Assembly: GCF_052425735.1 (NCBI RefSeq)
Contig: NW_027558470.1
Location: 1-64,000 of the forward strand
Length of the DNA stretch: 64,000 nt
Reading direction: 5' to 3'
Source: Oculina patagonica
Lineage: Eukaryota
In this document: piece by piece, positions 34,856 to 40,800 of the stretch
Numbering within the stretch: position 1 is the stretch's first letter
How the letters are laid out: every line of letters begins with the position of its first letter
Program-made: the position numbers and the translations under genes
The notes under the pieces: model-generated
Database searches by the model: none
Seen by the model: only the letters and a program-made list of their open reading frames with translations
Told to the model about the DNA's origin: nothing

Positions 34856-37800
34856 TATAACCGTGACGGTGGTTTGGAAACCCGATCTTCATTAGCATAG
34901 ATTTTTACGATTTTATTTCTCCGTTTACTCCGTAGTTTTTGTTTCGATTGAGAAGATATATCAAACACTCGAGACAGTGTTTCATCAGCTATCCAAACAC
35001 CTCGAATTTCGTCAAAAATACTCCGCTGCGCGTCGTATTTTCAACTCTCTTCTCGGTGTTTGGATATCCCGATGAAACACTGCCTCTCGTGTTTGATATA
35101 TTACTTCAAATCTCTGAACTCACTTTGATGAAACAGCCAAAGAATTCACTTTATAATTGCCTAGATCCACAAGAAATACTCGCAGAAAGTAATCATTGAC
35201 CGTCGCTTCTGGCACTAAACTTGCAAAGTAAACACAATCTTATTTTTCATGTATACGTAGTGAAAGTGAAAGCTGAACATCAGCAAATTCCATGGCTGAC
35301 TTAATACCTTTTTTAGTGTATTCAATATTTGCTTTGAATCCAACACTTCGATGAAACCAAAAGAAAATAAACTTTATACACAATAAAAAAACAATATCCG
35401 TAACATTTTGTGTACATTTATGTTTTAACAGCTTTTGGCGAATAAACATCACAGGCAGGTTGCGCTGATTGAAAGTCCTGATCAGAATTTGCCTGAGCGG
35501 AGGTTTGGGTCTGGTCATGCACCGACAAAAAACATAATAATAAGAAGAAATGCTGTGCAGAGCAAGAACCATGCTCGGCCCACGGCCACATGTTTAATTA
35601 GTGTTTAATGAGTCTTTATTATCTGATAAAGACACAGCTAAACTCTACATCCAATTTTTTCCAGGCCAAAATAACACCAAATCTAAATGTTAGTGCAAGA
35701 ATGAGTTGATCTACATTTAAAGATTTTGAAGCCGTTTAATAAATTTGCAGTTTGTGTTTTATCAAGCGTAAAACACTTAGTGGCGCCTTGTGTTTTAAAC
35801 TTGATAAAATGCTGCTGCATTTATTAAACATACCTTAAAAATTTTCAAACCAAAAATATTGTGCAAGCATGTACAGACAAAAAAAAAAATATCCTGCACA
35901 GCTGGGAGAATGTAAACATAAAATAGAGCAGCAAACATTTCTGCACCCCGACCCCCCCCCCCCCCCCAAATAAAAAATCTAATATATAGTATTGAAAATA
36001 TGTGAAATGATGTATTGCAATCATATTGGGCCTGTGCATGTATACATTACAAGCACTGTTGCCAGCTCACATATATGCAGCCATCCATGACTGGACACAG
36101 GCCAGGAGAGTGATGGAAAATGCTGCCTTTCTAATCTATAAAATCTTTAAATTAGCCTTACCTGCACCATTAACAGAAAATTCAGACTTGTTTGTGTCAC
36201 TGTCTTCATTTGGCGTGGAAACTTAAGAAGAGACAGATAATATTACCTGATCAGACATTAGTAAGATTGCATACCATATTTTTTATTATAATGCAAGTAA
36301 AAATTAAGACTGCAGCTGTAAATTAATACAGTAGAACCCCTATTAAGTGGCCACCCTCTATTAAACAGCCAGTTGTCAAAGTCCTGAAACTATTGTCAGT
36401 ATAATACTGTAGATAAATCCTTTATTTAGCGGCCACCTCTATTAAGTGGCCGCAGTCACCTTTTGGCTGTCCAGAAGAGCGTTCTTCTATTGTTTATTCA
36501 ATTGTTTATTCCTCTTATTTAGTGGCCAGCAAGACTGGCCACTAAATAAGAGGAAGGGTCTGTCAGACCTTGTCTTCAACAAGGTCTGACAGACAAGAGT
36601 CTAGAATAGAAAGTAACTACGAAAAAATTATTCAAACACAAGTTTGCTACCATCTTCATGTGATTCCATGATTACTTTTTATGCTATTTTGTATTAAAAT
36701 AAAGTGGACTTTCCAAAAAGCCTAATGGTGATTTCTGACTAACCCCTATAAAGCGGCCAAACTCTCATTTCCCCAAGGGTGGCCAGTTAATGGGGGTTCT
36801 ACTGTAAAAATCCAATTCGAAAAGAGAATTTCACTTCCATTAGTACATGTACCTGAAGGCAATGAAGACAACACTGAATGTGAACAATTCTTGCAAAAGT
36901 ACACAGGAGGTGAAAAGTCATCTTCCTCATGTACAGCTGAGCATGATGGAAAAGTGCAGATAACCTTTCTGCACTTAATACAGGAATGTTTATATACCAC
37001 TTCCCGGGAACACGTGTAGCAGCTGTTGCCTGCAGTTGCTGTCTGATCATGAGCTATGATAATACCAGAATTAAGTCAAATTAATTCATTACTGAACACA
37101 GGATTTTGTTCTAGAAAGGAAACAAACATAATCTTAATACATATACCATAACTATATAGAAAATTATCCCAATAGCAAAAGATAAGTTGAAAAGGTGAGT
37201 CAATTGATACCTCTTCCGTTATTGGCATAATACAAACTTTAAAAATACATAAATGTAAACTAGGTACATATGTATTTCATGTAGCATAACGAACAGTACT
37301 GCATGAACAGCATTGCTTTGTGGCGAACATTCAGATACTCCTTTAATTGTTAAACACGGAGCGAGCCTATAAATTAAAGCACTTTCATTGTTGGCTTCAA
37401 TTTTAAAAAAGATAATTTTAACCAAGATAACAAAAATTAGCGATATGTGCATAGAGTTGTTTGTAACAGTGTCTTGTAAAGGCAGAGGAGCTGAGAGAGG
37501 TAACATAAGTACCGTAAAAACCCGCAGATAAGCCGCACCTTTTTTTCCAAAAATTTTCGCTCGAAAGCAGGGGTGCGGCTTATCTGTGGGTGCGGCTTAT
37601 CCACGGGTATTTACGGTAAGTTTTCAGTATTGGTTTATTTTTAATTAAAATTTTTAACCAAGATTACATAAATTAGTGGGTATGTGCATATATAACTTGC
37701 CTTTAGCAGTGATGGAATTCTCACCAGAGTTGTTTGTGACAGTGTCTTGTAAAGGCGCAGGAACTGAGAGCAATCACACAAGTTAGTTCAGTATTGGTTT

Positions 37801-40800
37801 ATTTTAAATTGAAGTTTTCAACCAAGATAACAAAAATAGCGATATGTGCATAGAGTTGTTTGTGACAGTGTCTTGTAAAGGCGCAGGAACTGAGAGAGAT
37901 CACACAAGTTAGTTCAGTATTGGTTTATTTTAAATTGAAGTTTTCAACCAAGATAACAAAAATAGCGATATGTGCATAGAGTTGTTTGTGACAGTGTCTT
38001 GTAAAGGCGCAGGAACTGAGAGAGATCACACAAGTTAGTTCAGTATTGGTTTATTTTAAATTGAAGTTTTCAACCAAGATAACAAAAATAGCGATATGTG
38101 CATAGAGTTGTTTGTAACAGTGTCTTGTAAAGGCAGAGGAGCTGGGAGAGATAACACAAGTAAGTTTTCAGTATTGGTTTATTTTTAATTAAAATTTTTA
38201 ACCAAGATAACATAAATTAGTGGGTACGTGCATATAACACTTGCCTTTAGAAGTGATGGAATTCTCACCAGAGTTGTTTGTGACAGTGTCTTGTAAAGGC
38301 ACAGGAACTGAAAGAGATCACACAAGTTAGTTTTCAGTATTGGACTATTTTTAATTCGTTTTTTAACCAAGAATATAACATAAATTAGCAGTATGTGCAT
38401 ATACTAGTTGTACCTATCAGTACGTGCCAACAAGCGAAATACTCTTTGTTCATAAGAACAGATACTGAATGGTTTTCAATAAACTATATTTGTTTGAAAT
38501 GACCAAATTATGGTAAATTGTATTTTAGGTAACATGCGAAAAAAGTGCTATTATTTTCTCTGGTTTTCGAATGGTGGCCCCAGTTGAGTTCGTTTCACTG
38601 TAACAGTGAGCCGCGTGGACGCCATTTTGGTAATTTGCTCTTTAGCAAGGAGTGAGAGACTGGGAGCCAGTTGGGAAGAACAATACAACCCAAATATGGG
38701 GTTTACTTACACCCAAATATGGTTAAAAAATAGTCCCTTACGCACAATTTGAGATTTTTTTCAGTTATACACCCACGGCTCTATGATTCCGCTGCTGAGT
38801 CAGCCTCGCCTCTTGGCTCGGCTGCCTCATTGGCAATAACTTGCCTTTAGCAGTGATGGAATGCTCATCAGGGTTGTTTGTGACAGTGTCTTGTAAAGGC
38901 GCAGGAACTGAGAGAGATCACACAAGTTAGTTTTCAGTATTGCTTTATTTTTAATTGAAGTTTTTTAAACTTGAGATGACATAAATTAGCGGTATGTGCA
39001 TACAGTATGTAACTTGCCTTTAGCAGTGATGGAATGCTCATGAGAGTTGTTTGTGACAGTGTCTTGTAAAGGGGCAGCAGCTGAAAGAGATCGCACAAGA
39101 AAGTTTTCAGTATTGCATTATTATTAATGCAAGTGTTTAACCAAGAAAACATAAATAAACAGTATATGTGCATATGTAACTTGCCTTTAGCAGTGATGGA
39201 ATGCTCATCAGAGTTGTTTGTGACAGTGTCTTGTAAAGGCGCAGGAACTGAGAGAGATCACACGAGTTAGTTTTCAGTATTGCTTTATTTTTAATTGAAG
39301 TTTTTAAACTTGAGATGACATAAACTAGCAGTATGTGCATATGTAACTTGCCTTTAGCAGTGATGGAATGCTCATCAGAGTTGTTTGTGACAGTGTCTTG
39401 TAAAGGGGCAGCAGCTGAAAGAGATCGCACAAGAAAGTTTTCAGTATTGCATTATTATTAATGCAAGTGTTTAACCAAGAAAACATAAATAAACAGTATA
39501 TGTGCATATGTAACTTGCCTTTAGCAGTGATGGAATGCTCATCAGAGTTGTTTGTGACAGTGTCTTGTAAAGGCGCAGGAACTGAGAGAGATCACACAAG
39601 TTAGTTTTCAGTATTGCTTTATTTTTAATTGAAGTTTTTAAACTTGAGATGACATAAACTAGCAGTATGTGCATATGTAACTTGCCTTTAGCAGTGTCTT
39701 GTAAAGGCCTTTTGCGGCTAGTGCCAGTTCCTTTTGGATCAGGAATGTCTCAAGGACGTTTCAAAAACGAAATAAGCGCCCCCTTAAAATTAGCACCCCC
39801 CTCTCACCTTAGCAAATTAAGTGCCCAGGCACTATTTCAAGCATTTATGGCAATTAGCTCTATGAACTATATGTCTTGATCAAGAATCGTATACCTTTTT
39901 GGTTACGCCATGGAAGTCCTTGTACACCATAATCATAGCGTAACTCCTCACCAACTGCAATATCCTTAAGTGCATAGAGGGCCAAGTAAATCTTTGGACC
40001 TTCTTTAATTTTTCTCATAGCACAATTCGCCTTTCTTGATGGAGTATCATTAACCAGTCTCCCCAGTCCACTCGAAAATGAAGCATCCAAACTGTAAAAT
40101 CACAGCAATTTACATGTAGCATGTCAGAGCACAATAATACCAGAAACATGGCTATCATAAAAATGACATTATGGTGTTTAAACGTCCTTAAGGAAGCCAA
40201 TGTTCAATTTTTGCCAAAATACACCATTGATAATGATAAAAATTAATATGACCAAATTTTAACTTTTTACCCGTCACTTAGTCACAAAGGTTACCATAGC
40301 AACCATTGACGTTTTCTTTTGTTCTCAAACAAGCTTGATTTTCTCGAAATCTACATTGACTCTTGGTATTCATTTTTTGATATCTTCAAGTATAGTAGAT
40401 TGACTAACTGTACACAAAATTTTAGGAAAATCTGTAAGAGCGTTTTAGAGTAAATTAAGAATGAAGTTTTTGGTATTTTCTTATAATTTCCTACAATCGG
40501 TAGTCGATATATTTAAACAAATTAAAGCAAAAAGTCTTTCGCTTTTAATTAATGGTCTTTAATGGTGTAAGTATCTCAGTGAGAGTAACTGCTCTCAAAT
40601 AACACAAAACAATTTAAAAGCGCCCATTTTATATTACCGTGATGATTCGATTAAGCGCCCTCCTTTCAATAAGCGCCCCCTTCCGAATAAGCGCCCCCCT
40701 TCGAATATGTTTTTGTCAATAAGCGCCCCTATTCCAATAAGCGCCCCCATTCTAACAAGTGCCCTCATTCTTATAAGTGCCCCTATTCTAATAAACGCCC

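Follow-up and report, generated by a model that had tools for sequence, protein, structure and literature searches.

A tandem array of putative cassette exons with GC donors behind the SET domain of an uncharacterised gene in Oculina patagonica

The question raised by this locus is whether a tandem repeat of minisatellite size, located in an intron of a SET-domain gene of Oculina patagonica, is non-coding DNA or a series of small exons which would provide the encoded protein with a linker of variable length. The repeat lies in a 64,000-nucleotide (nt) stretch of the genome (NCBI RefSeq assembly GCF_052425735.1, contig NW_027558470.1, positions 1 to 64,000), hereafter the window, which is AT-rich (approximately 37% G+C) and contains 0 N. 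An earlier reading of these letters, made without database searches (the sequence-only reading), had proposed an array of 63-nt symmetric exons with GC donors, acting as a length-tunable spacer between a methyltransferase domain and the rest of the protein. Comparison with an orthologous array, with the exons of the host gene and with teleost relatives indicates that the units of the array are probably genuine cassette exons, which together would make up a linker of variable length. The finding is a combination of two known kinds, tandem exon duplication and GC-AG introns.

Anatomy of the array

All the array units are found inside the phase-1 intron comprised between the second SET exon and an exon with eight cysteine codons (Cys8 exon), and are read on the minus strand. 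The array extends over about 2.3 kilobases (kb) and its head-to-tail periods of 167, 334 and 126 base pairs (bp) are of minisatellite size. Tandem Repeats Finder detected the 167-bp period at 38837-39696, with a 334-bp super-repeat showing 97% matches, and the 126-bp period at 37726-38217. Seven units are intact, each consisting, as the sequence-only reading had described, of a pyrimidine tract ending in CAG, exactly 63 nt with a terminal AAG, and a GCAAGT donor. The acceptor ...gatctct(c/t)tcag is present in all the units, where AG, pyrimidine tract and branch site can be recognised, and the branch-like motif CTAAC, already reported as frequent, occupies positions -23 to -19 in 5 of the 7 intact units. 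The donor AAG/GCAAGT (the slash marks the exon boundary), which conforms to the consensus of U2-type GC-AG introns, appears in all seven and also in a further copy at the array edge. This donor 9-mer, AAGGCAAGT, has 9 copies in the window, where chance would give 0.67 (a 13-fold excess), and 8 of these copies belong to the array; the chance of a perfect GC-donor 9-mer in a 167-bp unit is about 1e-3. Introns between adjacent units measure 104 nt; later introns of the array measure 481-647 nt and contain decoy acceptors.

Since SET exon 2 leaves one base of a split codon and the Cys8 exon opens with the other two, exons placed in this intron need to be in phase 1-1, in agreement with what had been deduced from the window letters. 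The frame is kept by direct splicing from 39895 to 37053, and would be kept however many 63-nt units were included; the phase-1 peptide of these units reads (V/A)(P/A)(A/V)PLQDTVTNN(S/P)(D/H/G)E(H/N)SIT(A/S)K.

Besides the intact units, the array harbours four truncated ones, correctly recognised before as having kept the acceptor and lost the donor. All four retain the acceptor and 38 nt, and one 41-nt deletion, common to them, has removed the 3' end of the exon together with the donor. The edge copy had been presented as a divergent in-frame unit ending at 39686. It is indeed a repeat copy with a donor, but it is in frame solely from a weak acceptor at 39731/39730, which gives 45 nt; from the nearer ctag, just before 39717, it has 32 nt and breaks the frame. 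As the 45-nt in-frame reading requires the weak acceptor, use of this copy as an exon is doubtful, and it has no counterpart in the orthologous locus described below. Two insertions interrupt the array, one of about 430 bp, for which a search of the window and of the related loci L005, L008, L009 and L010 gave no further copy, and a palindromic one resembling a miniature inverted-repeat transposable element (MITE), whose second copy sits in the intron between upstream exons. No match to Rfam was obtained for the 36-41 kb region.

Conservation of the array in a related genome

An orthologous locus was located in the 2.46-megabase contig ctg21019_39x_l of ENA ERZ25067872 (loci L007/L008), by way of a relative, approximately 90% identical, of the 447-amino-acid (aa) exon of the window, followed by a look-up of small open reading frames (ORFs) upstream. 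The two loci are collinear, with SET exon 1 (92% aa and 93.8% nt identity), SET exon 2 (95% and 95.4%), the array, and the Cys8 exon (88% and 95.5%), in which all eight cysteines are conserved; the unique intron is about 80-87% identical, and introns of the two genomes have diverged by about 13-15%. The orthologous array is made of 10 units, nine of which consist of (c/t)ag, 66 nt and GCAAG(T/C), the remaining one being truncated, so that usable units number 7 in the window versus 9 in the ortholog. The exon of the orthologous unit has an extra in-frame ATT and a few substitutions, and encodes VPVPLIQDTATNNSDENSITAK. Between SET exon 2 and the array the ortholog (L008 16005-12913) contains about 3 kb of extra sequence, where the window has only about 70 bp and the edge copy. 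A third species could not be added, because two motif scans of Joint Genome Institute (JGI) metagenome contigs, one with the exon-end/donor pattern and another with the acceptor-module pattern, gave no matches.

The 7 intact units of the window and the 9 of the ortholog were co-aligned, and the constraint data that follow derive from them. Divergence between the genomes was 0.09 substitutions per site in the 27 nt before the acceptor, 0.19 in the first 12 exon bases, 0.09 in the exon body and 0.02 in the donor hexamer, and reached 0.32 in the intron middles on both sides, that is, about 3.5 times that of the core. The 27-nt acceptor module is near-invariant in both genomes. When consensus was compared with consensus, 6 of the 96 core positions differed versus 12 of the 70 flank positions (Fisher p=0.04), and comparison of the core with the 13.5% divergence of the unique intron gave p=0.02. 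Conservation of the unit core (about 94%) is level with that of the real exons of the gene (93.8-95.5%). Position-specific constraint, which is not expected in a non-coding minisatellite, is therefore present in the unit.

The sole exon indel between the genomes is the addition of 3 nt, and the unit introns have indels whose lengths cannot be divided by 3. All 16 units can be read through in phase 1; frame 0 contains stops in the ortholog and frame 2 in both genomes. Freedom from stops is on its own not very informative, because only 5 of the 189 single changes create a stop (our own arithmetic). With lengths of 63 or 66 nt, the units are symmetric and open in the phase demanded by the flanking exons. 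The exon status put forward from the window alone is thus reinforced at the sequence level by an ortholog that retains the array, the acceptor module, the GC donors and the phase-1 frame, with an in-frame difference of 3 nt.

The host gene and its relatives

Searches with tblastn, using longer relatives such as P0132 and P0305, revealed that the minus strand of the window, from 46.1 down to 17.2 kb, is collinear with the full architecture of a set of teleost SET proteins (Table 1). With P0132 and P0305 the family order was recovered at 43.0, 40.1, 29.0-27.8, 25.9-25.5 and 17.3-17.2 kb. Phase 1 at the end of the Cys8 exon fits a phase-1 acceptor present at about 29050; judging from order, strand and phase, the SET, Cys8 and downstream exons probably form one transcript. 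The Cys8 exon had been taken for a Zn-finger exon, which its eight conserved cysteines make plausible, but its similarity to FYVE/RING is sub-threshold in Pfam. Among named relatives, the one nearest to the SET exons is a protein of Porites lobata (70% identity), and PDB matches of SET exon 2 include KMT5A and Set1.

Table 1. Features of the array and of its host gene in the window
Feature	Position	Strand	Description	Evidence
Upstream coding exon	46059..46137	-	...EDQEGFEERFIDKYI, 1 base of split codon at end, donor gtatgt	tblastn with Porites lobata P0280 and other relatives
SET-domain exon 1	42854..43016	-	163 nt	Pfam SET E=1.2e-4
SET-domain exon 2	39895..40091	-	197 nt, end ...PWRNQK + G, donor gtatac	Pfam SET E=2.1e-5
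Edge copy	39686..39730	-	33-nt internal deletion, without array acceptor module, donor AAG/GCAAGT present	
Unit 1, putative cassette exon	39519..39581	-	63 nt, VPAPLQDTVTNNSDEHSITAK, cag acceptor, AAG/GCAAGT	
Unit 2, putative cassette exon	39352..39414	-	63 nt, AAAPLQDTVTNNSDEHSITAK	
Unit 3, putative cassette exon	39185..39247	-	63 nt	
Unit 4, putative cassette exon	39018..39080	-	63 nt, D to H variant	
Unit 5, putative cassette exon	38845..38907	-	63 nt, S to P variant	
Insertion, unrelated	38405..38836	.	about 430 bp, in intron after unit 5	
Unit 6, putative cassette exon	38245..38307	-	63 nt, VPVPLQDTVTNNSGENSITSK, nearer the type of the ortholog	
Three truncated units	37852..38141	-	starts 38141, 38015, 37889, 126-bp period	
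Unit 7, putative cassette exon	37701..37763	-	63 nt, VPAPLQDTVTNNSGENSITAK	
Insertion, palindromic, MITE-like	37515..37625	.	within the array	second copy 42600-42674, 88%
Fourth truncated unit	37453..37490	-	start 37490, acceptor present, donor gone	
Cys8 exon	36853..37053	-	201 nt, phase 1-1, putative zinc-binding module	
Large downstream exon	27779..29050	-	CCHH motif and domain of about 400 aa	tblastn; collinear with teleost SET proteins
Downstream exon	25461..25934	-	domain with ...LGHDI..HR.FYR...	tblastn
Exon matching the C-terminus of the teleost proteins	17157..17351	-		tblastn

The teleost set was gathered through a representative search with SET exon 2 and a profile search (alignment A1, built from P0132 and the 447-aa exon of the window). 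It comprises a large number of RefSeq proteins of 900-1600 aa, annotated only as 'uncharacterized protein LOC...' and sharing the same architecture, and no paper describing a family that joins SET, CCHH and this C-terminal region was found in a literature search. As in the window, proteins such as Carassius gibelio LOC127987297 show an N-terminal KMT5A-like SET domain, repeats after ...PWR, a CCHH region of about 400 aa, the LGHDI..HR.FYR domain and a conserved C-terminus. Among the 66 teleost proteins with a recognisable SET end, 45 contain a tandem repeat within the 450 aa that follow the SET domain; most of these repeats start right at the SET end, and they consist of 2 to 12 copies of a unit that usually measures 30-38 aa and in a few cases 11-74 aa. 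In Parambassis ranga (LOC114449059), three 36-aa repeats correspond to three separate 108-nt exons with cag acceptors and gtacag donors, contained in a genomic tandem repeat of approximately 725 bp, and they resemble the window units in being symmetric exons of such a repeat. Isoforms differing by whole units are annotated for Brienomyrus brachyistius LOC125717126, whose products of 1016, 1051, 1086/1087, 1122 and 1157 aa carry 1, 2, 3, 4 and 5 copies, respectively, of a 35-aa unit at the same post-SET position. The teleost units of 30-38 aa are longer than the 21-22 aa of window and ortholog, and the Cys8 exon, present in the window gene, was not detected in the fish proteins. Since fish use GT, the GC donor is not a trait of the family; most simply, it is a feature of the founder unit inherited by all the copies. 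Neither the repeat peptide nor the Cys8 exon was found among the 851 relatives obtained in the representative search with SET exon 2. The relatives P0068 and P0079 were considered as parallels of a cassette array and discarded, as their post-SET repeats lie inside one continuous ORF and not in separate exons.

The SET domain of the teleost family is closest to that of KMT5A/SETD8 (PR-Set7, a H4K20 monomethyltransferase), with E=1e-27 versus 1e-18 for the next family. SET exon 2 of the window also matches KMT5A, although for this exon alone Set1 scores as well. KMT5A differs in that its SET domain is the end of the protein, whereas in the window gene the repeat array and more exons come after it. 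A further difference concerns the 'NH' motif of the SET domain, which is ND (GRLVND) across the whole family, as in the window SET exons, P0132 and P0305; the ELRYDY tyrosine motif is retained.

Regarding other parts of the host gene, the domains of about 447 and 211 aa (29119-27776 and 26039-25404, minus strand) contain no Pfam domain and belong to a family with a patchy distribution, including corals, an octocoral, beetles, bivalves and fish, which may be transposon-derived; a second copy with 99% identity (P0151) is present in the same data. The LGHDI..HR.FYR motif recalls tyrosine recombinases of the Crypton-like type, but the profile and fold comparisons made for the C-terminal domain were uninformative, with no Pfam and no PDB sequence match. 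Its AlphaFold model was poor (predicted local distance difference test, pLDDT, 65; predicted template modelling score, pTM, 0.32), and the best recombinase matches of that model in Foldseek, XerA and lambda Int, had E values of 4-5. An acidic (GAT)n-rich ORF at 30480-30690 (minus strand), with a cag acceptor and a G/gtgaga donor and retained in the ortholog (L005 7146-7544), may be another exon; its phase, 0 to 1, misfits directly after the Cys8 exon. Tandem repeats of 18 bp (TTCGAATAAGCGCCCCCC) and related motifs (GGGGGGTGCTAATTT...GGGCGCTTATTTCG), at 40646-40806 and about 39790-39830, occupy the introns on either side of SET exon 2, and the one after this exon is conserved in the ortholog.

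Elsewhere in the window, segments of about 260-630 bp are duplicated internally in a region downstream of the 25.5-kb exon (about 21264-25240), as seen from multiple matches to single segments of the ortholog. A 219-aa ORF at 6856-7515 (minus strand) has a Cys-rich C-terminus and no Pfam match. Contiguous long ORFs occupy 52943-63431 on the minus strand, with 49-51% G+C versus about 37% elsewhere. Among their products are an integrase (rve) that also has a chromodomain, an ATPase weakly similar to the poxvirus A32 type, and two proteins of 456 and 765 aa without a family. This block looks like a Polinton/Maverick-type integrated virus-like element, with no polymerase within the window.

Alternative explanations and meaning of the array

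Coding repeat arrays distributed over exons are known, as in the PEVK exons of titin, the kringle IV-2 repeats of LPA and the SRCR/SID arrays of DMBT1. New splice variants are known to arise by tandem exon duplication (PMC9013439), and the array resembles such systems in the duplication of symmetric exons with their flanking introns, the change in copy number and the repetitive protein segment that results. It departs from them in the minisatellite scale of its 167-bp period, in which 63 nt of exon alternate with 104 nt of intron; besides, the best-studied duplicated exons are mutually exclusive, whereas those of the array are expected to be additive. GC donors whose context otherwise follows the consensus are functional, and alternatively spliced genes are enriched in them (PMC2490688); from this literature we draw the idea that they could lead to partial inclusion at this locus. 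With their AAG/GCAAGT donors, AG acceptor, pyrimidine tract and branch site, the window units are like U2-type GC-AG introns, differing from typical ones in that the 8 putative donors of the window and the 9 of the ortholog are tandem copies of one founder.

Several results weigh against considering the array as cassette exons. A hand count of the differences among the unit sequences gave about 13 that replace an amino acid to 6 that are silent, and the constraint must therefore act on frame and splice signals, not on residues; such a low residue constraint fits a disordered linker, but is by itself no argument for coding. The p values of 0.02-0.04 are modest, because they come from one species pair and from repeats evolving in concert. 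The four donor-less units and the two insertions indicate that the array decays and amplifies regardless of coding. A search with the peptide, as a 97-aa ORF containing one unit, against 5.8 billion proteins (word-indexed, those of 53-170 aa being eligible) retrieved none, and no full-length protein model of the SET/array locus was recovered in the relative and profile searches. At the paralogous SET locus (P0004; L009-L011; 74-76% identity) neither an array nor a Cys exon was found within 10 kb. Homology between the fish repeats and the window unit was rejected (hhalign probability 0.1%), which implies an independent origin or divergence beyond recognition, and the P. ranga array, with GT donors and phase-0 exons repeated at intervals of about 725 bp, differs from that of the window, with its GC donors, phase 1 and 167 bp. 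A 21-bp repeat at the paralogous locus, examined as a counterpart of the array, turned out to be a simple ccggaat-type repeat.

Part of these data would suit a non-coding intronic minisatellite, derived from a founder that was exon-like or a dead exon duplicate, never or negligibly spliced, and with units kept alike by concerted evolution instead of selection. The recent amplification attested by the 97% identical super-repeat, a 126-bp donor-less sub-array amplified equally readily, the insertions located in the array, the lack of a peptide match among database proteins of the eligible lengths and the lack of a silent-change excess all fall in place under this explanation. Concerted evolution, however, homogenises whole units, and leaves unexplained the 3.5-fold gap between core and intron middles, the conservation of the core at the level of real exons, and the facts that the sole exon indel has 3 nt and that only the required frame is open. 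The low chance of a perfect GC donor arising in the unit and the repeated presence of coding repeats at the same position in relatives also stand in its way, and we regard it as improbable. If the units are exons, all of them could be constitutive, recognised by intron definition across the 104-nt introns, the length of the protein changing by genomic copy number alone. The short and uniform introns, the donors that are perfect but for +2C, the strong acceptors with CTAAC branch sites and the different copy number of the two genomes speak for this possibility; we find it unlikely in view of the link between GC donors and regulated splicing (PMC2490688), of the fish relative annotated with a ladder of 1 to 5 copies from one gene, and of the longer later introns, whose decoy acceptors favour variable outcomes.

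A different doubt concerns the extent of the gene, as the window could contain two genes, a host SET gene with the array lying beside a transposon-like gene made of the 447-aa and 211-aa exons, in which case the array would either encode the end of a short SET protein or belong to a 3' region. In corals, beetles and bivalves the relatives of the 447-aa domain, whose spread is patchy, have no SET domain, the second copy P0151 is almost identical, and the Porites SET model ends soon after the SET domain. On the other hand, over 29 kb the exons follow the full teleost architecture in order and strand, the phases at the end of the Cys8 exon and at the acceptor near 29050 are compatible, and several independent long proteins join SET to the 447-aa region, which makes a split into two genes somewhat unlikely.

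We favour, then, an array of cassette exons in a single gene, in which the 167-bp unit would comprise a branch site, a pyrimidine tract, CAG, a 63-nt exon in phase 1 at both ends and a GC donor. Each included unit would add 21 polar or acidic residues, probably disordered, to a linker between the KMT5A-like SET domain and the Cys8 module, probably followed by the large conserved C-terminal region. Unequal crossing-over would alter the number of units over evolutionary time, and splicing may also alter the number of those included, yielding a linker of variable length. We infer both the splicing of the units into mRNA at this locus and their variable inclusion. The length-tunable spacer of the sequence-only reading is consistent, by analogy, with the 7 versus 9 units of the two genomes and with the teleost repeats and their 1-to-5 isoform ladder, though no matching protein came out of the 53-170 aa search. 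A broader and quite unlikely scenario, which we put forward as speculation, would make the post-SET intron a hot spot in which one uncharacterised, possibly transposon-derived KMT5A-like family has built cassette-exon arrays independently in a cnidarian-like lineage and in teleosts, with GC donors kept for part-time inclusion, a ladder of linker lengths setting the reach of the methyltransferase, and copy number varying between individuals.

To gene finders and repeat maskers an array of this kind would be an intronic minisatellite to be discarded; should it be coding, every annotation lacks up to 147 residues of the protein. The locus also draws attention to a large, widespread and uncharacterised family in which a KMT5A-like SET domain is combined with a conserved region of unknown function, and offers a simple test case of whether GC donors grade exon inclusion. 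That fish and the lineage of the window have repeat arrays with no detectable homology at one and the same place in the protein points to a selected property, be it the length of the linker or its valency.

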